Positions 1,743 to 56,960 of a stretch of 64,000 nucleotides of DNA are shown here, in pieces. Below the pieces are notes generated by a model. That model saw nothing but the letters and a program-made list of their open reading frames with translations. It made no database searches and was not told where the DNA came from. The position numbers were made by a program, and so were the translations under genes. Every line of letters starts with the position of its first letter. The stretch's first letter is position 1. Where the stretch lies: contig JANJGN010000052.1 of the NCBI GenBank assembly GCA_026770705.1, forward strand, positions 1,488,001-1,552,000. Direction: 5' to 3'. Origin of the DNA: Isurus oxyrinchus. Lineage: Eukaryota.

Positions 1743-1788
1743 ATGGGAGAGGTCGGTCTGATATTGATCTTCATCAGCTTGCTGCAAG
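1743..1788 (+). CDS. Gene A signal-peptide exon MGEVGLILIFISLLQ
   Basis: Acceptor AG at 1727-1728, ATG at 1743, hydrophobic stretch, phase-1 donor CAAG|gtac. Splices in frame to VGLSQEWKG. Confidence 0.8.
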
Positions 1789-4700
1789 GTACAAATTCAT
1801 TACTGATCGGAACTCAGGGAATTGGATTCTTTCCTGGAGTGAGGAAGTGAGGATGTTTCAGAGATAGGGAAGGTTGTAGGGGGGGTTGTAGGAGCTGGAG
1901 GAGGTTACAGAGTTAGGGAGTGTTGCAGGGGCTGGAGGAGGTTACAGAGAGAGGGAGGGGAGTAGGATCTGGAGGAGGTTACAGAGATAGGGAGGGTTGT
2001 AGGGACTGAAGGAGGTTGCAGAGATATGGAGTGGAAAGGGGGTTGGAGGGATTGGGAATTGAGAATGAGAATCTTAAAATCGAGTCGTTGCTTGATTGGG
2101 AGCCGACAAAGGTCAGTGAGTGATGTGGGTGGTGGTTGGGTGGTTAAAGGTTGAGTAGAAGATCAGGAATAACAACTGGGGATGAAGTCTATCCCAATGT
2201 TAGATGTCTGATAGCGATATCCTGAAATGAGTGTCTTTTGCTGATTTTATTCAGAATTTCCCATGAAGACAACACAGCAGCTCCTAGAATAGACAGGCTG
2301 TTCAGTGTCACACTTCCTGTCCATTCTCACCATGCTAGATACTTCAATAAGGGAGCAAGTTAACTGAAAGAGAGAAGGAAGGTAAAGCTGTCCGTGTGTA
2401 AAGGTGTCAATATTCAGTTTGTATATTTGTCTTTCTCTCGACACATGCAGAACTCAGGCTAGAGGCGCTTTGTTAGTGTGTTTCACAGTGTCTGCTGGAG
2501 GAGGGTCAGTGCTGAGCTTGGGGACAAGTCAGTCTACAATGCTGCATCGGAATCAACAATACAACAATATGGTGTTTGGATCAGAAATAATCCCGTAGAC
2601 AATGAGGATCCAAAGAGATTCCTCAGACAATGAGGATCCAAAGAGATTCTTCAGACAATGAAGATACAAAGAGCACCAATCAGATTGAATCAGATTAGCC
2701 AATCAGCTGTGTTGAAGAGCAGACAGGAATGTTAGGCTAATTAGTGATTCATGACGGTGATAATGGGGGGAGTTCTGAGGGCTCCTAATCCATTGTCCTG
2801 TCTTGTAAATCAGCACTGAATGGATCTCAATTGGTGCGTCTTGTAGACAATGTGTTGGGTGGAAGACTGGCTTCACTAAACAGGGTCCTGAGGAACATGA
2901 GCCAATGTAGAATGAACTTGTCCACTCCTGTGTCCAGGATTCTCTTCCATCCATTGTGAAACCTTGGGGAGTTCCTTGTGTATCCTGTAGATGGTCCACA
3001 CTGCAGCCACTGTGCCCCAGTGATGGAGGGAGTGGATATCGAGTCTAGTGGATCTACAAACCATCCAGAGTTAAATATTGATATTTCTCTCCCCAGTTGG
3101 ACTGTCACAAGAGTGGAAAGGTGACACTCCACGAGAGATGACAGCGCAGGAAAGTTTGTGTGTACAGATTCCGTGTCATTACAGTTATCCATCAGAGTTG
3201 GAAAACCAACCGCGAGGTGGAGTCTGGTTTAATAATGAGAAACAGATTCCCTGGGCTCCCATTGCCTTTCACTCCAAGGATCACAGTCACGAGTTACCAC
3301 GGTTCCACCATCGGACCCGGCTGTCTGGAGACCTGAAAGATGGTGACTGTTCTCTGATTATAAACAACATCAGACGGGAAGATGCAGGACCTTATTTTTT
3401 CAGAATAGAATTTGACAATGGTCCGAGCCATAACTATTACCCTGTAACCCAGCTTCACGTTTCTGGTAAGTGCTGTGTTATAATTACTCAACAATTCACA
3501 TTCAACACTCAATGGGAAATAACACAAACTGTGACGTTTACATATTAACACAAAATACAGTTTATTATAACAGACTGTCTGATTCTCAATAACTGGGTGA
3601 TAGCTTCCAGTTCAGTCCTAAAGCAACCTCTAATACTCACTTTAATATCAATGATTAAATGTATTGACTGTGTCCATCAATGTTATCAGGTTATCCACTC
3701 CCATTAGTCTCTCTAATGCTTTTGAAATGTCTAACAATTTGACAAAAGAAGGATGTGCATTCCTATAGCGCCTTACAACACCTCAGCAAACTTCAAATCA
3801 TTTCATAGACAATGAAGAAATTCTTGAAGTATAGTCACTAACGTGGCAGTGAGTTTGTGCACAGGAAGCTCCCACAGAGGGCAATGGGATCAGTGACCCA
3901 GATCTCTGAGAGAATGATGAGCCAGGGTTCCATGAGCTGTGGGCTGCTCCATCACCCACACCCCAGTGTTGTCAATTCAAGGGTCTGGGAGTGAAAGTGT
4001 ATTCAGCTCAGTGACACATTCCCCACCAAGTTTGAAAATAGGTAAGTTGCTGCTGATTGTTGTTACCTCTCAGTTCCCATCTCATCCTTGGAAACCTGCT
4101 TTCAAAATACAAAAGCAAGTCTCACATTTCCATAGCGCCTTTCACCACCTCAGGACGATCCTAAATCAATTCACAGTCAATGAAGTGATTCTTGAAGCAC
4201 ACATTCTCCCCACTCTCTGGTTAAAGAAGTTTCTCCTGAATTCCCCATTGGATTTATTAGTGAGGATCTTATATTGTCAGCCTCTGGTTTTGTTCATTGT
4301 GAGGAATGGAAACACTCTCTCCATGTCTACTCGATCAAAACCTTTCACTACTTCAAAGATCAAATGAGGTCACCCCTCAACCTTCTCTGTTCAAGAGAAC
4401 AGAGACCCAGCCTGTTCAGCCTCTCCTGATAGGTAAAGCCTCACATTGCTGAGATCATCCTTGTGAAGCTTTTTACCACCCTCTCCAGTGTCTCCATATC
4501 CATTTCCAAATGCTGAGTCTGCTCTCCCCGAGCTGTGAGCTGTTCCTCCACCCTCACCCAGTCTGGTCAAATCAAGGGTCACTGAGTGAGAGTGTATTAA
4601 TCTGAGTGACAGAGATTCAACAAGTGTAAAAATAGACAATTCTTAAATGATCATTGTAACCTCTCAGTTCTGATATCATCCTTGTAAAAGTGCTTTCTCT

Positions 4701-7700
4701 TGTGGGACTGTGGTTTCTATTTGAACTGATGCTTCACGTTATATTTCTCTAAAAGGATCCATTCTCTGTGTGTTAGATTTCACAGATAAACCCACGATAT
4801 TCCCTGCTGAAATTATTGCAGGAAAGCGTGTGGATGTAAGCTGCACCTTCAACACAACGTGCAATGGAACAGCAGCACCTGTCTTAACCTGGGACACTCC
4901 CACTGACGTACCTGGATCAGTCTCAAACACTGTAACTCAGCATGGTGTCACTCTGACCTATACTTCTGTTCTGACCCTGATCCCATCACTCAAACACCAC
5001 GGACACACTCTCAGCTGCAGATTGAGATATCCATCTGTTTCATCGAAGCGGACCCTCGTAATGACTGTGCTATGTAAGTACAAACACCCTTCATTCTACA
5101 TTAGCTGGAATAGTATCAAATGTGCACAGCAAGCTCCCACATACTGCACTTTGTTTACCAACAAACCATTGGTGTTTCACTGGTAAAAAGTGACCCCTGA
5201 CAGGCAGTACATCCTTACTACTGACTCTCCGACAGTGCATCATGGACTCATAGACTCATAGACACATAGACAGAAGGAGGCCATTTAGCCCATCATGTCC
5301 ATGCTGGTCAGCAACTCCCTCCCCAAGTGCATCACCTCACACTTTTCCAGGTTGAATTCCATTTGCGTCGTGATCATTCCCCCTATATTTAATTCCAATT
5401 CATTTATATACACCACAAACAGCAAGTGCCCCAGCACTGAGCCCTGTGGAACCCCACTGGAAACAGACATCCAGTCACAGAAACATCCCTCCACCATCAC
5501 CCTCTTCTTCCTGCCTCAGCCAATATTGGATCCAACGTGCCACTTTGCCTTGGATCCCATGGGCTCTTACTTTCTTGGCCTCTCTGCCAAGAGGCACCTG
5601 ATCAAAAGCCTTCCTCAGCCCATGTCGACCACATCAAAGGCATTACTCTCATCAACACTCCTGGTTACCTCCTCAAAAGATTTGATCAGGTTTGTCAAAC
5701 ATGACCTTCCCTTAACAAATCCATGCTGAATATCCCAGATTAATCCTTGTCTCTCCCAGTGCAGATTCATTCTGTCCTTCAGAATTCTTACTAGTAACTT
5801 CCCCACCACCGAGGTTAGACTGACTGGCCTGTAATTTCCTGATCTATCCCTTCCTCCCTTTTTTAATAATGGGACAACATTAGCCATCCTCCAGTCCTCT
5901 GGCACCTCACCTGTGGCCAGAGAGGATTTGAAAATTACTGCCAGGGCCCCTGATATCTCTTCCCTTTCCTCCCTCAACAGCTTTGGATTCATCTCATCCA
6001 GGCTTGTGGATTTATCCACTTTTCAGGCCATTAAACCCACTAGTACCTCCTCTCTCTATGTTAATTTCCTCTCATATTTCACTGTCCTCCACCCTGATGT
6101 TATACCTGCATCATCCTTTTCCATTGTGAAGACTGATGCAAAGTATTCATTGAGGACTGTACCCACGTCTTCCAGGTCCACACACACATTACCTCGATGG
6201 TCCCTAATCAGCCCCACTCTTTCCCGAGTTATTCTGCTGCTCTTTACATATTTAAAAAAACCCTCTGGATTTTGCTTTATTCTACCCACCTGTGTTTTCT
6301 CATGCACTCTCTTATCTTTCCTAATGTCCTTTTTCAGTTCCCCTCTGCACTATTTATACTCCTCTAGGGACTCTGCTGTATTGAGCCCTCAGTATCTGCC
6401 ATAAGCTTCTCTTTTTTCTCAATCCTAACCTTTATGTTCCTTGTCTTCCAGGGTTCTCCAGACTTGGTCTCCCTCTTTGTCTTTACAGGAAGATATCTGC
6501 TCTGTACTCTCGCTATTCCCTCCTTGAATGCCTCCCACTGCTCTGATACAGTTTTATCTGCAAAGAGCTTCTCCCAGTCCACTTGGGCCCAATCATATCT
6601 CATCTTAGTAAAATTAGCCTTTCCCCAGTTTAGAATTTTTATTCCCAGCACAAACTTATCCTTCTCCATAACTGTCCTAAATCCAATTGAGTTACAGTCA
6701 CCATCTCCCCTACTGATACGCTTTCCACCTTCCCCGGCGCTTTTCCATATATTACGTCCAGAACTGTCCCCTCCCTTGTTGAGCTTTCTATGCACAGGCT
6801 AAAAATCTTCTCCTGGATGCAACTTCAGAATTTTTCTCCCTCCCTACCTTGCTCACTAAAGCTGTCCCAATTAATATTTGGGTAGTTAAAATCCCTGAGT
6901 ATTACTGCTTTATTATTCTTACACATCTCTGAAATGTGATCACATGTTGGATTGTCCATCTCTCCCTGACTGTTTGTTGGTTTTATATCTTGAGTCTATG
7001 AGTTCACTGGTTGATTAAACTCGAATTGCACTCCTTCATATACACTTGTTAGTTGATAAAAACAAAAAAAATCAACTCTTTTCTTCTCCCCCGATGCTGC
7101 CAGACCTGTTGAGTTATTCTTAGCTGATGCTCGCTATCAATAACCAAGAGAGACCAACATTAGAACAAGCTGATTATTTATTGTAACAGAGGGCAGAGCA
7201 CTAAATCCTTGCCTGCTCCCACCGCCACCTCCAGCTCTAGACTTACAGTTAACCAGTGGCCCACACTGTCCAGTGATTGGTCAGTACTGTCACATGGTTT
7301 ATCCACTTGTATTCTCTTAAAGGTACCTGGCACTCCACATTATCACAGGAGGCCTATAGTACACACATAACAGCGTGTTTGCCTCCTCAGCACTGACCCG
7401 TCTACAGTGCAGCATTTCCCTCATTACTGACTCTCTAACAGTGTAATGATCCCTCAGTAGTGCTCCTCCAACATTGCACTGGTCAATCAGAACTGACGCT
7501 CTGACTGTGCAGTTTTACCTCAGCAGTAACCCTCCTACAGTGCAGCGCTCCCACAGTACTGTCCCTCCTACAGTGCAGCACTCCCTCAGGACTGACCCTC
7601 CTACAGTGCAGCACTCCCTCAGAAGCGAACATTTGACAGTGCAGCACTACTTCAGTACTGACCCTCCAACAGTGCAGATCTCCCTCACTACTGACCCTCC

Positions 7701-10049
7701 GACAGTGCAGCACCCCCTCAGGACTGACCCTCTGACAGTGCAGCACGCCCTCAGTACTGACCCTCTGACAGTGCAGCACGCCCTCAATACTGAACTGAAG
7801 TGTCTGCCTGGATTACGGGCTATGTGGTGAAAGAGCTTACATTGACATCACACCTTTCACATTCTCAGTGTCTTTCAAAGTGCTTCACAGTCAGTGTAAG
7901 TTAACTGATCTGTATTTGTTTTTAGATGCTCCACGGAATCTCTCAATTACTTCTCCAGATATGATTAACGCTTCATCGATCAATATAATTGAGGGGAATT
8001 CTGCAGTGATAATCTGCTCTGTCGAGAGCTTCCCAGCTTCTAACCTGATGTGGCGACATCTTAATGTCCCAATGAACAGAACAAGTTCCAACAATGAGCT
8101 GTGGTTGGTGATTCCTCACGTTACATCCAGGGATACTGGAGAATATCAGTGTGTGGCAGAGAATGAACATGGAGCAGTGGAGGGGTTCCTAACCATTACT
8201 GTGGAACGTGAGTGTACACAGACTTTAATATTTCTCTCATCTCCGAACACATATACTCAGATGCTCTCCCACACACACACAAGCACTCACAAATGTACAG
8301 ACCCAAAGTGCATGCACACACACAATCCCACACTCATGAGCACACAGAAAGACACACTCACACACAAACACAGTAGTACACACTTCCCTGTGAGTTACCT
8401 GACCTCCCTCAGTACTGCACTGGAGAGTTCTCCTGGATTCTGGGATATGTGTTCCCATTCATATTTATCGAAGAATATCCAAATTACAAAGTCTATTCCA
8501 GAAACTCACATGCACAAAGATTCCAACAGATACTCCCCACCTCTCCGTGTATCTCTCTCCTCCTTTAAGAAGCTTCCTAATCCCTAACTCTTGCCTGTCC
8601 TAACTCCTCCTTATAATGCCCTGTGTCAAATATTTTGTGTATCTGAGAGAAAGGGAGAGATAAGGAAGTTTAGGAAGGGATTTCCTGTTAGTGAAGAGCT
8701 TACTTCTTTTTCTCACCTTTCCAGTGTTCAGTTTTGCCATCATGTCCAATGACCCTGTTTATAATGGGGGCCTCCTATGTAAACGTCACACTGTCTTTAC
8801 ATCCTCCCACCAGTGGTGGCACTGTGGTGCTTAACCTTGCACCTCCCAGCTTTTCAGCCAACGTCACTTCCCAATTTGCTACACATGCTGTAAGTTCATC
8901 AAAATTAACTTATATATCAAATGGTAGATGTGATAATTCATTTTATTGAAAGGTTCATCCGCGCTCTGGGAAAGGTTTGCACTCTCCAGGAAGCAGGAAT
9001 AGGCTGGATGTTGGGGAGTTCATCTTTTCCCAGAGAGTAGGGATCCTCGGGAATGTGCTGTCAGTGGGTGTGGTGGTTGCTGTCTCTCTGTTGCCTTCAA
9101 GAGGGATCTGGAGTGGTTACTGACTGGGGGAGAGATCATGGAAGCAGAGAATGATACAGCACAGGAGGAGGCCATTCAGCCCATTGTGCATGTGCCAGGT
9201 CTTTCAATGTTCTATCCAATCAGATCCACTAACCACCACTCCACTTTGCCCCCATCTTCTTCCTTCAAGTGTTTATCCAATTTCCCTTTTGAAAGTTCCT
9301 ATTGAATCTGCTTCCACCGCCCTTTCAGGCAGCACCTTCCAGATCACAACAACTCGCTCTGTCAAAACAAATTCTCCTCATCTCCCCCTCCAGTTCGTCA
9401 ATCTGTGTCCCTCTGGTTACCGACCCTCCTGCCCCTTAAATACATCGATCCTGTTCACCTCAACCACTCCCTGTGGGAGCGAGTTCCACATTCTCCCCTC
9501 TCTCTGGGTAAAGATTGGAACTGTTTATTAAGCGGGGGGTGTAAGTCCGTGGGGGAGTCCATCTCGATCCTGCCCGATTCGCACACGCGTCCGAGATGGA
9601 TTTCCACCCTGCACTAAACGTTTCCAGAATTTTCTACAGCACAATCCTGTACACAGCGATGGAGAGAAACATTGGACAGGGAGTCCAACAGCACAATGAT
9701 CCATTCTCACCAATGTTCCACGCTAAGGGGAAAGTTCCGATTGTCCACTCTTAGAGTGTTTACAATGAAAACATTCATTCCACATTGAATCCCAGTGGAT
9801 GGGTCAATATTACAGCAAATGTTGCAGTGATATGAAGCTTGATTGTTCAGCCAGAGTGAGAGATTGAAAGCAGAGAGTCAGTGATGATTTCTTTCTGTGT
9901 GTTCTCTAGACAGTGGAGGAGAGATTCTGCACGTGATCCTGATCCTGGGAATACGAGCTGTGATATTCCTTGTGGCTGTGGTTATCACTATCGCTGGAGT
10001 CTGTGTCTGGGAGAGACAAACAGTGAAAGGAAGTCGACAGACTGTTTGA
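1743..10049 (+). CDS. Gene A: Siglec-like receptor, activating type (leader, V-set, 2 C2-set, TM with Arg, short tail); exons 1743-1788, 3097-3465, 4777-5073, 7926-8207, 9910-10049; ~377 aa
   Basis: All introns are GT..AG and phase 1. Exon lengths sum to 1134 nt, open to TGA at 10047-10049. Siglec V-set hallmarks are present (CVQIPC, DCSL, YFFR). Confidence 0.88.
1850..2060. repeat. ~37-bp purine-rich tandem repeat (gagatagggagggttgtaggggctggaggaggttaca); inverse array at ~13690-14010
   Basis: Visible degenerate tandem copies. Confidence 0.75.
3097..3465 (+). CDS. Gene A V-set Ig exon (sialic-acid-binding domain)
   Basis: cccag|TTGGA acceptor, TCTG|gtaag donor. N-terminal Trp, CVQIPCHYSYP, GDCSL, GPYFFR with the essential Arg at 3402-3404, as in CD33/MAG/sialoadhesin V domains. 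Confidence 0.95.
4190..4505 (-). mobile_element. CR1-like LINE 3' fragment
   Basis: Similar to the CR1 3' ends at 10150-10770 and 57400-57910. Confidence 0.55.
4777..5073 (+). CDS. Gene A C2-set domain 2 exon
   Basis: ttag|ATTTC ... CTAT|gtaag, 297 nt. SCTFNTTCNG..PVLTW carries the extra Cys used for the V-C2 interdomain disulfide in Siglecs. Confidence 0.93.
5245..6978 (-). mobile_element. Degenerate CR1 LINE ORF2 (reverse transcriptase region)
   Basis: Minus ORFs contain WRMANVVPLLKKG..GNYRPVSLTSVVGKLL, QHGFVKGRSCLTNL and SGVPQGSVLG. Confidence 0.92.
6980..7347 (-). mobile_element. Solo LTR of the Gypsy-like element found at 18503-20488
   Basis: Matches both LTRs of the gene B element and sits at the same position inside the shared CR1. 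Confidence 0.75.
7385..7795. repeat. 33-bp minisatellite (cagtgcagcactccctcagtactgaccctccga)
   Basis: Tandem copies; they produce the spurious TVQHSLSTDPP ORFs. Confidence 0.92.
7926..8207 (+). CDS. Gene A membrane-proximal C2/I-set exon
   Basis: ttttag|ATGCT ... GAAC|gtgag, 282 nt. IICSVESFP..W..DTGEYQCVAEN.HG. Confidence 0.93.
9910..10049 (+). CDS. Gene A terminal TM exon HSGGEILHVILILGIRAVIFLVAVVITIAGVCVWERQTVKGSRQTV*
   Basis: Pyrimidine tract plus ctctag acceptor (9908-9909). The phase-1 reading gives a hydrophobic helix with Arg (CGA 9954-9956) and a stop at 10047. Absent from the ORF track, which shows a different frame. Confidence 0.85.
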
Positions 10050-10149
10050 AGCTTTGTACAGCAACAATCTGGTCAGTCAGTGCGGACAAATAACGTGTGA
10101 TGTTGTGTTAAGTTGTAAAGAAACTGGTCAGTGTCCTGGTTAGAATCAC

Positions 10150-10770
10150 CTTCGTATCAGAGAGGCATTCCAGCACAGTGGGAGCCCATTCAGCCCATTG
10201 AGTCTATGCTGTCTCTCTGTAGAGCAATCCAGTCAGTCCCATTCCCCCGCTTTATCCCCGTATCCCTGTGAGTTTATTTCTAAGTGTCCGTCCAATTTCC
10301 TTTTGAAATCATTCATCGTCTCCGCTTCCACCATCCTCGTAGGCAGCGAATTCCAGCTCATTACCACTCGCTGTGTAAAAAAGTTCCTCCTCACATCCCC
10401 CCCCGCCCAAAACCTTCAATCTGTGTCCCCCAGTCCTTGTCCCATCAGCTAATGGCAACAGCTTCTCTTCGTCTACCTGATCTAAACCCATCATCATCTT
10501 GTACACCTCGATCAGATCCCCCCTCAATCTCCTTTGCTCCAAGGAGAACAACCCCAGCTTCTCCAGCCCAACCTTGTAGCTAAAATCCCTCATCCCTGGA
10601 CCCCTTCTGCTCAATCTCCTCCCCACCCTCTCAAGGACCCTCACTTCCTTCCCAAAGTGAGGAGACCAGAACTGGACACAATACTCTAGTTGTGACCTAA
10701 CCAGAGCTTTATAAATGTTCAGCATAACCTCCCTGTGTTTGTTCTCAATCCCTCGATTTATGAAAAGCTT
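10150..10770 (-). mobile_element. CR1 LINE 3' end
   Basis: ORF with YKALVRSQLEYCVQFWSPH and GLFSLEQRRLRGDLIEVYK. Confidence 0.92.
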
Positions 10771-11121
10771 ATTCTTTCCATCAGCACAAACAGCAATTTC
10801 CAAGCTGACTCCCATCAGCAGACAGAGTGCAATGAAACATCGGCATGCCTGCTTCTTAATGTACGGAGAGAAACCTGGAACGAGAGATTCTCCTTCTTCT
10901 CCTCAGCAAGCTGAAACTTTTCCTTATACCTGGTGCTCCCCAGTCCTGCTGTGTGGACACATCATAACCACGGCATTGTCTGGCTGTGTGCAGCCAACAT
11001 GGACGAATAGGAATGAACAGAAATGTGACGTTGCTAAACTCTGTTCTCTGATTGGAATGTGCTTTCTGAATGCTGCACCTTTTTCATGCTGCGATAGATT
11101 GTAAGAAGCATTTGGGTTATG

Positions 11122-11127
11122 AATAAA
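11122..11127 (+). terminator. Candidate polyadenylation signal for gene A
   Basis: AATAAA inside a 3' block shared with genes B and C. Confidence 0.4.
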
Positions 11128-11469
11128 ATTACATTGATTAACTCAAGTGATTAAAATGCTCAGCCTGTTCTGTAGATACTTATGGATTAAAATTCTTATT
11201 TTGCTGCCAGATTCTTGGCTCAAAGACATTACTTCATGTTGTCACTTTTTCCAGTCAGATGAATTCCTGTGCCCATCTTTATAATGGAAATTTTCAATGT
11301 AAACACGTCACATTGCAGCTGCACACAATTGCCAGTGGGTGGTGTGATATCAAAGCTGCCTTGCTGCTCAGAAAAAGAGAGAAATATTCCTGATAAATGC
11401 ATGAACTTCATGTGTGCATCAGACACTGACATCAGATGCAATTTTGTGCAATTTGTGCAATGTATTTTA

Positions 11470-12005
11470 GACAGTGCAGCACTCCCTCAGTTCAGACCCT
11501 CCAACAGTGCAGCACTCCCTCAGTTTAGACCCTCCAGCAGTGCAGCACTCCCTCAGTTCAGGCCCTCCGACAGTGCAGCACTGCGTTAGTTTAGACCCTC
11601 CTACAGTGCAGCAATCCCTCAGTTTATACCTTTCAACAGTGCAGCACTCCCTCAGTTCAGACCCTCCAACAGTGCAGCACTCTCTCAGTTTAGACCCTCC
11701 AACAGTGCAGCACTACCTCAGTTCTGACCGGCCGACAGTGCAGCACTCCCTCAGTTCAGACCCTCCAACACTGCAGCACTCCCTCAGTTCTGACCGGCCG
11801 ACAGTGCAGCACTCCCTCAGTGCCAACACTCTGACAGTGCAGAACTCCCTCAGAGCTGTCCCTCAAACAGAGCAGCACTCCCTCGCTGCTTATCCTCCAT
11901 CAGTGCAGCACACCTCAATACTGACGCGCCAACAGTGCAGCACTCCCTCAGTACTGACCCTCTGACAGGGTAGCACTCCAACAATACTGACCCTCTGACA
12001 GTGCA
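11470..12005. repeat. 33-bp minisatellite array
   Basis: Same unit as 7385-7795. Confidence 0.92.
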
Positions 12006-12179
12006 GAACATGCTTATTATTTATCCTCCAACAGCATTTTTAAATATAAACCCTCAGAGCCATGGTAGAAATTTGAAGTTAACAAACAGCAAACAGAAAG
12101 ATCACAGAGTCATGATGAATTGCCAACAGTTTGATTCTGTTGTAACGCATTGTGAAATTACTCACTCACTCCTACTGCC

Positions 12180-49895: not shown

Positions 49896-52800
49896 CACAC
49901 ACACACGTGTAGGCACACACATGCACACTTATACACACACAGTCATACACGTGCAAACACATACAGAGGAATATATATACACAACTCACACACACACACA
50001 CATTCATGCCCACACATAGACACACACATGCACATTCACTCACTCTTGGACAGACGTAGACACACAGTCATGCGTGCATGCGCACACACAGATACATGTG
50101 TGCATACACACACAAGCACACTCACTTCTGCAGAAACACAAACACACACACACTCACACACATACACAAATGTGAGTTCCCTCTCCTCTCTCAGGGTGCA
50201 CTGGAGTCTCGGTATCAGCTCTGATTCTGTGTTGAAGGAAGGTAAACTCCAGATCAACAAGACCCTGAATTGGATGAGCAACCTCCTGAACAGAGAATGG
50301 TAGATTTACCCCTCAGTGCTCCATCAATCAAACATTGCCTGTCAAGCCCTTGGCGAAATCCTGAGGATATGAAAGCAAGCTTCTTTCATTCTAGATGGAC
50401 AACACCTCTACTGGTGGGAGAATGCAATTGCAGTGTGACAGTTTACATAGGCAGTGTCCATTAAAAATGTGGCATTAGACCTTATCCTGAGGGAAGTTAC
50501 CTGGAAATGCATTCAGACATCAGATACAGAGACATGATGCATGGAGTCTTGCTGTGCACTATGTTTGCTCACGTTAAAATCTTTATATGTTTTTAGATGC
50601 ACCATGGAATCTCTCAGTCAATTCTCTTGATATGATTAACGCTTCATGGATCAATACAATTGAGGGGAATTCTGCAGTGATAATCTGCTCTGTCGAGAGC
50701 TTCCCAGCTTCTAACCTGATGTGGCGACATCTTAATGTCCCAATGAACAGAACCAGTTCCAACAATGAGCTGTGGTTGGTGATTCCTCACGTTACATCCA
50801 GGGACACTGGAGACTATCAGTGTGTGGCAGAGAATGAACATGGAGCAGTGGAGGAGTTCATAACCATCACTGTGGAACGTGAGTTACANNNNNNNNNNNN
50901 NNNNNNNNNNNNNNNNNNNNNNNNNNNNNNNNNNNNNNNNNNNNNNNNNNNNNNNNNNNNNNNNNNNNNNNNNNNNNNNNNNNNNNNNNNNNNNNNNNNN
51001 NNNNNNNNNNNNNNNNNNNNNNNNNNNNNNNNNNNNNNNNNNNNNNNNNNNNNNAATCCCACATGTGCACAGGTGTGTACACCTGCATGCTCACACACAC
51101 AGAAGGAAACATACACAGAATCACACGTGTGCTTGCTCAGACACACACAGACATGTGTGAGTAGTCTGTTCTTGCTGTGCTGCACTGGAGTGTTGCTCCA
51201 GATTCTGCTCTGAAACACTGACGACATCAGCTGAACAAGACCCTGTATTGGACGAGCAGCCCCCTGCACAGAGAATTGTAGGTTTATCACTCAATACCCC
51301 ATTATTCTAAAGCAATTCCTCCACTGTCAAATCCCTGTGAACATCCTGATGATGTGAAAGACATTTTCTTTTCTTCTAGCCCGACAGTGTCTCCTCTGGT
51401 GGAAGGCTGTAATTACAGCGTGACAGTTTACATATCCACATGCAGCAAGAGCTGAACAACACTCAGCTTGGCTGAGAAATGACAATTAATGTTCATGCCA
51501 CACAAGTACCAGGGAGAGCTGTTCCTTGTGTTGACCCTTGGGATTGTTTATCCCAACCTGATAGGGCAGAGGGGGCCCAGGTTGTGACTATCAGTGTGTG
51601 GCAGAGAATGAACATGGAGCAGTGGAGGGGTCCATAACCATCACTGTGGAATGTGAGTGTGGAGAAATATTTGTTTGTTTGTTGTCTCCGTGGTCTCCGT
51701 GGAGCCATTGGGATCGTGTTGTTTTTAATCCAGTTTTCTTCAATCCTCGCTCAGTCCACGTTATCCACACATCCAATTTTTCCTCTCCCTTTCTGTTTTT
51801 GCTCTCAGTTTCTCCTTCAATGGTTGTGAGGACAAGGCTGTCAGGTCTTCGTTTCCAATCTCCGTACTTGACGACCTTTCTCTCTCTAACTGTCCTGAAC
51901 AACCCTTTTAATTGCTGAACTTCTCATTCTTTAATTGATAAATATTATATATAAATGTTACATGGATTACTTTGAAATGCAACACTTGTATTCATAAATT
52001 GCTTAGAAATGACTAAACATTCAACAGCCAATGAAGCATTATCGAAGTAAGCTAACTGTTGTAAAGGAGGAAACACAGGTACTGATGTGTACACAGCAAG
52101 ATCCCACAAACCACCGTGTCTTAATGACCTGATAGGCGATTATTTCAATGAGGTTGGTTTTTTAATGTGTAGAGAGACTACATACCCTTTAGGGAGGGAA
52201 GCATGTCTCGATGTGGATGTGACTCCAGTCTCAGACACCATCATGGTTAAATCACATCTGCCCTCTGAACTGCTCTCCCAGTTTGGGACAAACCAGTGGT
52301 TCAGGAGGAAGACCCCCCACCACCTTCTCAAGGGGAAACTAGGGATGGACAATAAATGTCAGCATTGCCGAGAATGAATATTTAAACACTGAGTGAGTGT
52401 ATCGCTTCTCGAGATACATCGGAGCATCATTGTAAACCTGTAGTGCAGTAATTAATGGCTGTTTTTACAGGTAGAGACTCCAGTAAATGGACAGTAGGAT
52501 TGTTCACGGCTGGGATCATGTTGAGTGTTTTCCTGGCTGGAATCTTCATCTTCATCTGTGTGAGAAAGTAAGTCTGAAGATTTAACTTGATTTTAATATA
52601 AACATTTGCTTCAATGTTCTTTCCTGAAGTCGGTGATTGTTTCCCTTGTGTTAAGCGCCAGATGCCTCTCCCTAACTGGTCTCTTTATCCGTTATGATCC
52701 AGACAGAGTTTTTCATTGCCCGTTATCCAGATGAATAATAATCAGTTGCTGTGATCTGGAAGGTGCTGCCTGAAAGGGCGCTGGAAGCAGATTCAATAGG

Positions 52801-54705
52801 AACTTTCAAAAGGGGAATTGGATAAATACTTGAAGGGGGAACATTTGAAGGGCTATGGGGGGAAGAGCAGGGGTGGAGGGGGGGTCAAAGATATGGCGTG
52901 TCATTATAATGATATTATACCTTGGGCTTATTTACTGTATAAGACAGAAAACACCAATCACTCATAGGGGATTTGGTGAGATTGTTAATGATTTGTTTAT
53001 CAAGACTCGGCACGAGAACAGTTATACATACGGAGAAAGCTTGAAGGTATCAGAGCTGTGTGTGTGTGCTCTGCTCAAAGCAAATGTCAAACTGAGATTG
53101 GATCACATGACACACTTCCATTATAGTGATGTCACGCTGATACCCCTTATTGGAACAAGAGACAGTCCAGTCATTGGTGTAAGGTTACAGTGGGCTCTGT
53201 GTCTGTGCTGCACTGACTCTTTGCTATATGATAACCACAGTGTGATATTGTGTTATTGCAGGAGAAAGACAGCGATGGAGGAGAGAGGTTCAGGGACCAA
53301 TTACATTGCATTGACCCCCAGGTCACTCTCTGTGAAGCACCAGGTACAGGAGCTGTTTACACTCACTCCAAAGCTTCAACCTCAGTCTGTAGACAACACG
53401 TATACCAGATTCTCAACCGGGTTACACACAGATATCTCCCTGTGAAGTCAGCAATGGCTCAGTGGTCAGCACTGTCTCTCGCTCCCTGCCTCTGTCTCCC
53501 TCCATCACTCGCTCTTTGACCAGAAACCTGAACACAATAATGACAAGGCACCTGATGTCAGCAGTGAGGGAGTGCTGCACTGTCAGAGGGTCAGTACTGA
53601 GGGAGTGCTGCACTGTCGGAGTGTCAGTACTGAGAGGGTGCTGCACTGTCGGAGGGTAAGTTGCACTGTCAGAGGATCAGTACAGATGGAGTGCTGCACT
53701 GTCGGAGGGTCAGTACTGAGGGAGTGTTGCACTGTCAGAGTGTCAGTACTGAGGGAGTGCTGCACTGTCAGAGGGTCAGTACTGAGGGAGTGCTGCACTG
53801 TCAGAGGGTCAGTACTGAGGGAGTGCTGGACTGTCGGTGGGTCAGTACTGAGGGAGTGCTGCACTGTCTGATGGTCAGTACTGATGGTGTGCTGGACGTT
53901 CGGAGTATCAGTACTGAGGCAGTGCAGCACTGTCAGAGGGTCAGTACTGAGGGAGTGCTGCACTGTCAGAGGGTCAGTACTGAGGGAGTGCTGCACTGTC
54001 AGAGGGTCAGTACTGAGGGAGTACTGCACTGTCGGAGGGTCAGTAGTGAGGGAGTGCTGCACTGTCAGAGGGTCAGTATTAAGGGAGTGCTGCACTGTCA
54101 GAGGATCAGTACTGAGGGAGTACTGCACTGTCGGAGGGTCAGTATTGAGGGAGTGCTGCACTGTCAGAGGGACAGTATTGAGGGAGTGCTGCATTGTCAG
54201 AGGGTCAGTATTGAGGGAGTGCTGCACTGTCAGAGGGTCAGTATTGAGGGAGTGCTGCACTGTTGGAGTGTGATAGAGATTAAATTATAAAGAGAGAGAG
54301 AGAAAGCGAGAGAGAAAGAGAGACAGAGAAAGAGAGTGAAAAAAAAGGCTTAAACCCACTGAGACACGACTGACAGTAACGAGGCTGCACAATAATTTAA
54401 CCCTATCAGTGCCAGTAAATGATGTGAGGATGTCTTCTGTTTCTATTTCTCTGTAGGATGAACAGAACTTGCTGATTTCTGAGCCCCAGGAAACAACCAG
54501 AGACACAAACAGTGAGGGGGAGACCCCAGCTCCCCGGGATCTCTCTGAAGGTCCAGTGGGAGGCGATGTTGGACATGGGAACCCCGACAAACCAGACGAG
54601 CTTTTCTACGCCAACATCAACTTTTCAAAGCTGCCCGGCGGTGACAGGACTGTGCACAGGAGCGAGGACACGGAATACGCACAGATCAGGTTCCAGAAAA
54701 ACTGA
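36131..54705 (+). CDS. Gene C: long inhibitory Siglec-like receptor (leader, V, C2, 31-aa stub, 9 tandem C2, TM, ITIM tail); ~1253 aa if all exons are used
   Basis: 16 exons with GT..AG and compatible phases, summing to 3762 nt. Tail has TNYIAL, LFYANI and TEYAQI. Confidence 0.87.
39602..39967 (+). CDS. Gene C V-set exon
   Basis: 366 nt, open. CVQIPC, GVWF, DCSL, YFFR (Arg at 39904-39906), SYSY. Confidence 0.95.
40826..41122 (+). CDS. Gene C C2 domain-2 exon
   Basis: 297 nt, AG/GT intact. Confidence 0.93.
41342..41434 (+). CDS. Internally deleted C2 mini-exon (APQNLSFTSLDMINASSINIIEGFITITVE)
   Basis: 93 nt, equal to the 282-nt unit minus 189 nt. Splice sites and frame retained. Confidence 0.6.
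42129..42410 (+). CDS. Gene C tandem C2 repeat exon R1
   Basis: 282 nt, phase 1-1, AG/GT intact. Confidence 0.9.
43092..43373 (+). CDS. Gene C tandem C2 repeat exon R2
   Basis: 282 nt, phase 1-1. Confidence 0.9.
44122..44403 (+). CDS. Gene C tandem C2 repeat exon R3
   Basis: 282 nt, phase 1-1. Confidence 0.9.
45115..45396 (+). CDS. Gene C tandem C2 repeat exon R4 (same peptide as R2)
   Basis: 282 nt, phase 1-1. Confidence 0.87.
46145..46426 (+). CDS. Gene C tandem C2 repeat exon R5 (same peptide as R3)
   Basis: 282 nt, phase 1-1. Confidence 0.87.
47196..47477 (+). CDS. Gene C tandem C2 repeat exon R6
   Basis: 282 nt, phase 1-1. The acceptor is preceded by a (TA)n run, so it may be weaker. 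Confidence 0.85.
48274..48555 (+). CDS. Gene C tandem C2 repeat exon R7
   Basis: 282 nt, phase 1-1. Confidence 0.9.
49536..49817 (+). CDS. Gene C tandem C2 repeat exon R8
   Basis: 282 nt, phase 1-1. Confidence 0.9.
50597..50878 (+). CDS. Gene C tandem C2 repeat exon R9
   Basis: 282 nt, phase 1-1; followed by the N gap 50889-51054. Confidence 0.9.
51581..51652 (+). pseudogene. 3' remnant of a further C2 repeat exon (DYQCVAENEHGAVEGSITITVE)
   Basis: Matches the last quarter of the repeat exon with its donor; the 5' part is deleted. Confidence 0.75.
52471..52567 (+). CDS. Gene C TM exon RDSSKWTVGLFTAGIMLSVFLAGIFIFICVRK
   Basis: tttacag| ... |gtaagt, 97 nt, uncharged hydrophobic helix. Not in the ORF track. 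Confidence 0.9.
53262..53343 (+). CDS. Gene C cytoplasmic exon A (RKTAMEERGSGTNYIALTPRSLSVKHQ)
   Basis: 82 nt, phase 2 to 0; Tyr motif TNYIAL at 53296-53313. Confidence 0.88.
53565..54270. repeat. 33-bp minisatellite, about 20 copies
   Basis: Tandem array; source of several spurious ORFs. Confidence 0.93.
54457..54705 (+). CDS. Gene C terminal exon with ITIM (LFYANI) and distal ITIM-like/ITSM motif (TEYAQI)
   Basis: 249 nt to TGA. Motifs at 54601-54618 and 54670-54687, arranged like the CD33-type proximal ITIM plus distal TEY motif. Confidence 0.92.
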   Translation, partial: DEQNLLISEPQETTRDTNSEGETPAPRDLSEGPVGGDVGHGNPDKPDELFYANINFSKLPGGDRTVHRSEDTEYAQIRFQKN

Positions 54706-54897
54706 GTGTGAAACAGGGAGCGGGACTGTGGGGTGTGTGCAGCCAACATGGCCAAATAGTAATGAACACAAATATGATGTTGCTCAACTTTTTTTTATTG
54801 GTTTTAACTGAGCTTTCTGAATGCTGCACCTTTTTCCATGCTGTAAAAGATTGTGAGAAGCTTATGAATTATGTATAATTTTACATCTGTTAATACA

Positions 54898-56960
54898 AGG
54901 TGAGGTGAGAGTGACTGCCTTTGACATCAAGGCTGCATTTGACCGAGTGTGGCATCTAGGAGCCCGAGTAAAACTGGAGTCAATGGGAATCAGGGGTGGT
55001 ACGAAAGTATAATAATTTGCTTAATATTTTCCTGGTTTGTTGTAAACTAGGTTTATGGGTGTGAGTGTAGATGGGTCTGTCTGTGTAGTTTAATTACATC
55101 TGGAGACAGGTAGACTGCAAGTTTGAGATTATCAAAAGAAGCTAGATGTAGAAATGTACTTGAAATGCTAATGAGAACACATGGAGGTTGCCTTAGCATG
55201 TAAGGTGTGAAGGGGCTGTTTAGATTTCAAAGGGATGTTGGTCTGTTTAGGACAAGCCCAATAAGCAAAGCTAAGGAGTTTTTTTTTTAATTTTACCCAA
55301 ACTTCATTGACAATATTGGCAACATGAAAGTTTATATTATGGGAAAGGTACAGTTCCAAAGAATTTACACATCAAAGAGAGAGAAACATGTATAAAGGAG
55401 AATGAAAGGCTATGTTGGGGGACATGTAAGATCTAACAGGAGTGTGTGAAACAGGCTTGAAGAAGCCTCCAGGCATTTGTGCATAAGTCTGTTATGTTCA
55501 GTAAATAAAGTTGGAGAAACCCATTTAGAATTCCAGTGTCAAGTGTGTGCTGTGTTAACTCGCTGGATTTGTTTTTAATCTAAAATCTTATTTTGGACTG
55601 TTGCCTTAAAAGGGGTATGTAACTGGGAGTCAGGTTAATTAGGAATTTGAGAATATATTTTAGCTGTAACTAACCATGGTATTATGTCTGTGCTTGAAAT
55701 CTTTTATTTTGTTAATAAATATCTTAATTGAATTTTTAAAATCTCTAAAGGTTGTGGTCAACTCATTACTCCTGAATTCAGTGCACGCTTCTTGTAATAA
55801 ATACAAATTGCAAAACTATTGTGATAGCGTGACCAATTTTCCCTTGTGGATTTGGAGCACCAAGCACACATCATCTGCCATGTCATGTCACAGGGAAAAC
55901 TCTCCACTCGTTGGATTCATACCCAGCACAAAGGAAGGTGGTTGTGGTTGTTGGAGGTCAGTCATCTCAGTTCCAGGACATCACTGCAGGAGTTGCTCAG
56001 TGTAGTGTCCTAGGCCCAACCATCTTCAGCTGCTTCATCAATGACATTCATTCTATCAGATGGTCAGAATTATGAAAGGTCGCTGATGATTGCACAACGT
56101 TCAACATCATTCATGACTCATCAGATGCTGAAGCAGTCCATGTCCAAATGCAGCAAGACCTGGACAATATCCAGGCTTGGCCTGACAAGTGGCAAGTAAC
56201 ATTCATGCCACACAAGTGCCAGGCAATGACCATTTCCAACCAGAGAGAATATATCCATCTCCCCTTAATGTCCAATAGCATCACCATTGCTGAATCCCAC
56301 ACTATCAACACTCTGGGGGTTACCAATGACTAGAAACTGAACTGGACTAGCCATATAAACACTGTGACTATAAGAGCAGGCCAGAGCCTGGGAATCCTGT
56401 GGTGAGTAACTCACCTCCTGACTCCCCAAAGCCTGTCCACCAACCTCAAGGCACAGGTCAGAAGTGATGGAATACTCTCCACTTTCTTAGATGAGTGCAG
56501 CTCCAACAACACTCAAGAAGCTCGACACCGTCCAGGACAAAGCAGCCCTGCTTGATTTGCGCCCCGTCCACAAACATTCTCTCCCTCTACAACTGATGCA
56601 CAGTGGCAGCAGTGTGTGTACCATCTACAAGATGCAATGCAGGGAGTCACCAAGCCTCCTTAGACAGCACCTTCCAAACACATGATCACTACCATCTCGA
56701 AGGACAAGGGCAGCAGACACATGGGAACACCACCACCTGGAAGTTCCCCTCCAAGTCACTCACCATCCTGACTTGGAAATATATCACCGTTCCTTCACTG
56801 TCGCTGGGTCAGAATCCTGCAACACCCTCCCAAACAGTTCTGTGGGTGTACCTACACCACAGGGACTGCAGCAGTTCAAGAAGGCAGCTCACCCCCATAT
56901 TCTCAAGGACAATTAGGGATGGGCAATAAATTCTGGCCTAGCCAGTGTCAGTGAATGAAT
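54898..56960 (+). mobile_element. L2/CR1-group LINE RT and 3' end, interrupted by an LTR-like element
   Basis: AFDIKAAFDRVWH-like start at ~54915, resumes at ~55891, then MQQDLDNIQAW.DKWQVTF, and a tgaatgaa tail. Confidence 0.85.
54997..55890. mobile_element. LTR-like element, inverted homolog of 15013-16057
   Basis: Both ends align in reverse complement with the gene B intron element; it splits the LINE. Confidence 0.7.

Follow-up and report, generated by a model that had tools for sequence, protein, structure and literature searches.

The stretch of DNA analysed here (the window) comprises 64,000 nucleotides (nt) of Isurus oxyrinchus (assembly GCA_026770705.1, contig JANJGN010000052.1, positions 1,488,001 to 1,552,000 of the forward strand), and positions are counted from its first letter. 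It holds three immunoglobulin (Ig)-type receptor genes, which we call A, B and C. We focused on an exon at 9910..10071 (+), downstream of the Ig exons of gene A, which encodes a transmembrane (TM) helix with a buried arginine. This is a genuine coding exon and one copy of a conserved shark TM cassette with the core ILGIRA. The Ig exons of gene A, searched one by one, consist of a V-set exon at 3097..3465 (+), a first C2-set exon at 4777..5073 (+; Pfam C2-set_2 at 4779-5072, E of 4e-9; end ...GTGCTAT) and a third Ig exon (Ig3) at 7926..8207 (+; Ig_3/I-set at 7928-8206; donor AAC/GTGAGT). All three are bounded by AG and GT and are in phase 1 at their ends, and Ig3 is open with canonical splice sites. 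The V exon matched Pfam V-set and Ig_CD22, and its nearest solved relatives were Siglec-5, Siglec-8, Siglec-7, CD33 and MAG (E of 6e-15 to 1e-12), with its YFFRIE aligned to the sialic-acid-binding arginine motif YFFRVE of Siglec-5. A candidate leader exon encoding the signal peptide was placed at 1743..1788 (+; MGEVGLILIFISLLQ; phase-1 donor AAG/GTACAA). When its last residues, ...SLLQ, are followed by (V)GLSQEW, the peptide agrees with how two S. canicula models, P0012 and P0013, begin (MIGKSYFLLSLLQVGLSQEW). Judged from sequence, the gene A ectodomain is of the Siglec type and CD33-related-like, with predicted glycan binding.

The acceptor AG of the TM exon at 9908-9909 is preceded by the pyrimidine-rich tract TTTCTTTCTGTGTGTTCTCTAG (tract and AG together, 9888..9909, +), and the exon sequence downstream is ACAGTGGAGG. 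The frame from 9912 reads SGGEILHVILILGIRAVIFLVAVVITIAGVCVWERQTVKGSRQTV and then TGA at 10047-10049, so that the coding part is 9910-10046 and 22 nt of 3' untranslated region (3'UTR) lie between the stop codon and the donor. The exon peptide is made up of SGGEILHVILILGIRAVIFLVAVVITIAGVCVW and ERQTVKGSRQTV, and the part after the tryptophan has 12 residues and no tyrosine. The Arg codon, CGA at 9954..9956 (+), supplies the single basic residue within the membrane helix of what would be a type I protein (ILGIRAVIF). The helix is flanked by acidic residues on the outside (SGGE) and basic residues on the inside (ERQTVKGSRQ), and the tail contains none of the tyrosines of immunoreceptor tyrosine-based inhibitory, switch or activation motifs (ITIM, ITSM and ITAM). 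The end of the product at 10035-10046 reads -RQTV, as in S. torazame models (-RRTV in S. canicula). This end fits the class I PDZ-ligand pattern (T-x-V) but is not conserved, since orectolobiform versions end in -KGS.

The V, C2 and Ig3 exons of gene A all end in phase 1, and the frame they require is thus the one that holds the helix; the codon formed at the junction with 9910 would encode His if the splice came from 8207 and Tyr if it came from 5073. In a six-frame Kyte-Doolittle scan, the exon gave the only membrane-span-like peak on the + strand between 8207 and 14500, in the stretch up to the next gene. Its 21-residue mean hydropathy was 2.95, a value reached in none of 300 dinucleotide shuffles of 8208-14500 (largest, 2.90). 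Neither the hydropathy scan nor similarity searches found another TM candidate for gene A in the window, blastn and tblastn found no second copy of the exon within the 64 kb, and no Pfam family matched the peptide. An earlier note on this DNA had proposed a phase-1 TM exon with an intramembrane arginine behind the AG at 9908-9909, with a 12-residue tyrosine-free tail and with no relation to the TM exon found in genes B and C. The acceptor, phase and hydropathy agree with the first proposal, the translation to the TGA with the second, and the third with the lack of any BLASTP alignment at E ≤ 100 to that exon (GRDSSKWTVGLFTAGIMLSV...ICVRK). The note's remark that the exon had been missed by the track of open reading frames (ORFs) is true but trivial: an internal phase-1 exon has no long ORF in its frame.

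Contigs from four sequencing runs of four studies (X1, X5, X6 and X7; X5 and X6 from a second organism) were aligned over 7800-11460. They are Logan contigs, tentatively taken to represent RNA, and being contigs rather than reads they indicate neither expression level, strand nor absence. In all four runs, contigs begin at 9908/9910 and span the exon (X5 and X6, 9908-10071; X7, 9908-10070, without a mismatch in 163 nt). Immediately before the acceptor, coverage of the intron bins is limited to low-depth contigs in X1, X5 and X6, and X7 has no contig there. An unspliced contig of X1 covers 9609-9918 with 1 mismatch in 310 nt. Ahead of the exon, X1 carries GGAGCGGACCCTCGTACTAACTGTGCA and X6 carries ...GTGGACCCTCGTACTAACTGTGCA, and in both an AG and then ACAGTGG come next (common end, ...CGGACCCTCGTACTAACTGTGCA and AG). 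The upstream partner is in both cases a C2-type exon, whose 3' end (...RTLVLTVQ), joined in phase 1, gives Asp-Ser-Gly-Gly-Glu at the junction (TLVLTVQ-D-SGGE). Because these contigs join a phase-1 C2-type exon to 9910, they confirm the reading frame that had been predicted from the sequence. If the contigs do represent RNA, the exon class is spliced into mRNA in the coding frame, and we infer that gene A itself uses it.

Downstream of the stop codon, a joint 10071>10785 (GT..AG) was found in three runs. In X7 it lies inside an 850-nt contig, and X5 and X6 have loose ends that agree with it, before 10780 and behind 10071, respectively. The joint defines a 3'UTR intron at 10072..10784 (+), which holds a retroelement fragment with a reverse-transcriptase (RT)-like ORF (10309-10815, -), and a last, non-coding exon at 10785..11209 (+). 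The latter has polyA signals at 11122, 11150 and 11186, and contigs end at 11174-11229. The stop codon lies 22 nt upstream of the last exon joint. The Arg-TM exon is thus not the terminal exon, although coding does end within it. In the second organism, the stop codon is TAA rather than TGA, one extra T stands behind 10052, and the Leu at 9939-9941 is replaced by Gln, as in the SLAMF9-like SVQILGIR of Mustelus. At the Ig3 exon, an X7 contig joins 8207>7926, which is the signature of tandem Ig3 exons in a spliced transcript, like the array of gene C at 42131-50877.

We searched 1.84 billion representative sequences exhaustively with the 45-residue exon peptide (cut-off, E ≤ 0.001). The 10 matches were all from sharks. 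They comprised a CD33-like V-C2-TM protein of S. torazame (84% identical), a 'Siglec 12' of the same species (V-V-Ig3-Ig3-TM), a 'Siglec 13' of C. punctatum (V-C2-Ig3 x n-TM), CD22-like chains of C. punctatum and H. ocellatum, a single-V 'sialoadhesin-like' protein of R. typus, and SLAM-like proteins of S. torazame and Mustelus asterias. The cassette was C-terminal in all of them except the repetitive P0008 and the chimeric model P0010. Region-restricted word searches starting from P0001 and P0002 yielded two and one further proteins, respectively: the S. canicula 'Siglec 13' (P0012, 272 residues) and 'Siglec 14 isoform X2' (P0013, 273 residues), both leader-V-C2-TM, and a multi-V model of S. 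torazame. None of these word searches led to an annotated product of gene A. In NCBI models, six shark species carry the cassette.

The core ILGIRAxIF...G.CV was kept in 11 of 11 cassette-bearing proteins, with an invariant Arg and a tail of 3 to 11 residues without Tyr, whereas the tail ends vary between species (-QTV, -RTV, -KGS and -TNS). Between a Siglec-like and a CD22-like protein, the cassette alone could be aligned (75% identity over 36 residues), with at most 27% identity elsewhere. The comparison with a SLAM-like protein gave a single alignment of 192 residues with 26% identity, in which the identities were densest in the cassette. The TM identity was 65 to 90% across unrelated ectodomain families and two shark orders, and this preservation of the helix, as read from sequence, argues for a conserved membrane partner. 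The models contain two kinds of junction: the cassette follows either a C2 exon, through D or Y, or an Ig3 exon. In S. torazame P0002 and C. punctatum P0003, an Ig3-type exon is joined to the cassette, as proposed for gene A, and the occurrence of both types makes an Ig3>TM architecture of gene A plausible. We give even odds to a broader proposal, namely that the Arg-TM exon was copied among at least three unrelated architectures of the immunoglobulin superfamily (IgSF) in galeomorph sharks (Siglec/CD33-like including multi-V, CD22-like C2 chains, and SLAM-like) as well as a single-V form, that one adaptor hub serves all of them, and that activating counterparts arise by replacement of the TM/tail cassette.

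Genes B and C share highly similar ectodomains with gene A. The amino acid identities between A and C are 85% (V), 96% (C2) and 88 to 95% (Ig3), and those between A and B are 80% (V, with a stop codon in B), 96% (C2) and 92% (Ig3). The tail of gene C contains LFYANI and TEYAQI, and the tail cassettes of gene B keep TEYAQI. Gene A and the linked gene C, with its ITIM-bearing tail, therefore show the layout of paired activating and inhibitory receptors. The DNA homology of A to B and C passes through the Ig3 exon and ends at about 8220-8380. It resumes at 10930-11344 with the 3'UTR of B and at 10971-11147 with that of C, where it begins about 15 nt past the stop codon of C. The stretches homologous to the last exon of gene A lie at 30813-31232 in B and 54721-54899 in C, and a decayed ITIM exon was looked for in the last exon of gene A and none was found. 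Because the homology breaks after Ig3 and returns in the 3'UTR, we propose a cassette replacement: gene A would have been an inhibitory-type Siglec gene like C, in which a segment of about 2.5 kb with the Arg cassette took the place of the TM and cytoplasmic exons, while the old 3'UTR would have been retained as the last, non-coding exon.

Several other features of the cluster were observed. Genes A and B are 97.5% identical over 2.35 kb (4705-7056 = 16229-18580); this block includes an RT-like ORF (5285-6800, -), a retroelement fragment that lies in the C2-Ig3 intron, and it suggests recent gene conversion or duplication. The TM helix of gene B (21636-21735) contains a Glu (LLAEIFIF) and that of gene C (52500-52562) a Gly (FLAGIFIF), and an acidic residue in the helix of a receptor with an ITIM-like tail, as in gene B, is unusual. 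Runs of N at 21132-21539 (gene B) and 50889-51054 (gene C) begin no more than about 10 nt past the Ig3 exon and the last Ig3 exon, respectively, which is where homology to the gene A intron would mark the start of the cassette replacement. Satellite arrays with a repeat of about 33 bp, one frame of which reads PPTVQHSL, are found in introns and between genes across the cluster in both orientations (7385-7793, 11470-12034, 20508-20713, 23572-23832, 26658-26918, 29551-29787, 53557-54271 and 61578-61868).

Taken together, we consider it likely (probability of roughly 0.68) that gene A encodes a Siglec-like receptor of a leader, V, C2, a possible third Ig domain and a TM region, closed by the Arg cassette and activating through an adaptor. 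In the membrane, the buried Arg would pair with the two aspartates of a dimeric ITAM adaptor. This pairing would allow surface expression, and the binding of sialic acid or a mimic would then give an activating signal, opposite to that of B and C. The position of the Arg, within the uppermost third of the helix, makes a partner of the zeta/FcR-gamma type ('RDD' assembly) the most likely one, with a DAP12/DAP10-type partner in second place. ILGIR marks the beginning of the conserved hydrophobic core, and since a polar Gln or His directly precedes this motif in the SLAM-like copies and in the second organism, the Arg was placed at about position 5 of 23. An Arg near the helix top, as in TCR-alpha, CD89, NKp46 and NKp30, assembles with zeta-zeta or FcR-gamma dimers, whereas DxxxT/S modules, DAP12 among them, pair with a central Lys, and the central Arg of NKG2D assembles with DAP10 (PMC13107469). 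Both the activating function and the identity of the adaptor are what we infer.

Several observations weigh against this reading, and the first group of them concerns the transcripts. The earlier note had proposed a joint from 8207 to 9910; none was present among the contig joints listed for the four runs. The exon end that is joined to 9910 in RNA, ...CTAACTGTGCAAG (...CTCGTACTAACTGTGCAAG), is not that of any C2 exon in the window (gene A, ...CTCGTAATGACTGTGCTAT; gene B, ...GCAAT; gene C, CTCATAC), and it differs from that of gene A at 4 of the last 16 bases. All contigs over Ig3 have C at 8134 and 8143, where gene A has T8134 and A8143; A8143C would turn GEYQC into GDYQC, as in the paralogues, and the Ig3 variant of gene A itself was absent in four of four runs. 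Furthermore, 296 upstream letters of the X7 contig do not fit the gene A Ig3 exon. The simplest reading of the abundant transcripts is that they come from V-C2-TM paralogues or divergent alleles. It could then be supposed that gene A is a silent or decaying copy and that the RNA on 9910-11209 comes entirely from near-identical paralogues, V-C2-TM genes that make the 'D' junction. All contigs that reach the acceptor start at 9908, with the AG contributed by an exon ending in ...GCAAG rather than by the ...GCTAT or ...GGAAC of gene A, as this explanation would have it, and a 648-nt intron contig is just 97% identical to the window. However, the four exons of gene A all have open frames and canonical phase-1 splice sites, the X7 contig over 9908-10070 is 100% identical, and the X1 contig across 9609-9918 differs once in 310 nt. 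In addition, contigs drop rare variants, and the joints seen are those among the loose ends listed, with 130 more beyond the listing. We regard a silent gene A as rather unlikely.

The second group of observations concerns the partner. If the semi-polar HVIL is counted as membrane, that is, from Val-8 of the exon peptide, the Arg lies 8 residues deep, between the gamma/zeta and DAP12 positions. FcR-gamma was not found in cartilaginous fish in data of 2014 (PMC4016189), for which reason the shark partner may be zeta, an unrecognised gamma-like chain, or DAP12/DAP10. A receptor that is activating but coupled to a DAP12/DAP10-type module (DxxxT/S), as in Siglec-14, -15 and -16, would accommodate both points, and it would agree with the use of DAP12 by the known mammalian activating Siglecs (a subject on which PMC13358205 cites Angata 2020) and with the pairing of the NKG2D Arg with DAP10 (PMC13107469). 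However, DAP12-type assembly normally involves a central Lys and an upper-helix Arg is the zeta/gamma signature (PMC13107469), and the polar residue before ILGIR in the SLAM-like copies and the second organism returns the Arg to position 5, so that we consider this alternative somewhat unlikely. It is also conceivable that the Arg helix recruits no signalling adaptor and that the product is a non-signalling decoy, or a retained or shed form, which competes for ligand with the inhibitory Siglecs. The adaptor pairing proposed above is a prediction, and a very short tail whose end varies by species would suit a decoy. However, the TM identity of 65 to 90% across unrelated ectodomains in two orders points to a conserved helix-helix partner, and an unpaired buried Arg usually leads to retention in the endoplasmic reticulum and degradation (PMC13107469); we hold the decoy to be very improbable. 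The activating, adaptor-coupled receptor remains our preferred reading of gene A. The earlier interpretation is supported in part: the coding exon and its frame, the single outer-helix Arg, the short Tyr-free tail, the Siglec-type ectodomain, the paired layout and the conservation in six species speak for it, whereas the 8207>9910 joint was absent from the joints listed, and the activating function and the adaptor are predicted ones.

In mammals, paired activating and inhibitory Siglecs have been attributed to an arms race between host and pathogen. Finding this design in sharks, assembled with a reusable Arg-TM cassette, would mean either that the design is ancient or that it evolves repeatedly by exon replacement. 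If the proposed copying of the cassette is true, paired CD33-like Siglecs with an ITIM and a TEY-x-x-I tail predate the mammalian ones or arose independently. The invariant ILGIRA helix also offers a handle for finding the ITAM adaptor of sharks, a question raised by the report in 2014 that FcR-gamma is missing from them (PMC4016189). We found no paper on Siglec pairs or on the Arg cassette in cartilaginous fish in the literature, and sharks go unmentioned in a review of sialoglycan-binding proteins from 2025. However, such proteins are already in the public automatic annotation of other sharks, and the gain for the window alone is modest: one more copy of an exon present in that annotation.

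Functionally, the nearest known systems are the primate pairs Siglec-5/-14 and Siglec-11/-16. Like gene A and gene C, human Siglec-14 and Siglec-5 (and also Siglec-16 and Siglec-11) are adjacent genes with highly similar Siglec ectodomains, of which one has a tail with an ITIM and an ITIM-like motif and the other a short tail and a basic residue in the helix. In the human pair, the similarity is maintained by gene conversion, to which the 97.5% identity of shark A and B over 2.35 kb may be compared. However, the shark pair probably arose within sharks and its members are probably not orthologues of the human ones, and the shark TM exon is common to non-Siglec receptors. An independent origin within sharks is argued because the cassette is common to shark CD22-like and SLAM-like genes; gene A is probably not a Siglec-14 orthologue, and the NCBI name 'lectin 14' is automatic. 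To our knowledge, all mammalian activating Siglecs use DAP12, whereas the shark adaptor is a predicted one.

The nearest relatives of gene A in overall build are NCBI automatic models of other sharks (S. canicula P0013 and P0012; S. torazame XP_072325011 and XP_072326180; C. punctatum XP_072409577), in which the cassette is 84 to 89% identical to the window exon and which share the leader-V-C2(-Ig3)-TM order and the Tyr-free tail. They differ in being from other species or paralogues, with a V domain of partial identity to gene A as judged by eye, and the S. canicula tails stop after ERRTV, unlike that of the window exon; we found no paper that describes any of these models. IgSF multigene clusters that mix ITIM-bearing and charged-TM members are also found among the NITR and LITR of teleosts and the MDIR of skates; they resemble the gene A cluster in this and differ from it in ectodomain family. 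In the helix, the nearest systems are the gamma/zeta-coupled Arg receptors. Like the shark exon, CD89/FcalphaRI, NKp46, NKp30, LILRA, GPVI and OSCAR, which are coupled to FcR-gamma/zeta, combine a very short tail with one Arg placed high, within the upper third, in a type I helix. The shark motif I-R-A-x-I/V-F/A-x-V is reminiscent of L-I-R-M-A-V-A. These receptors differ from gene A in belonging to another ectodomain family, and FcR-gamma was reported absent from sharks in 2014 (PMC4016189).

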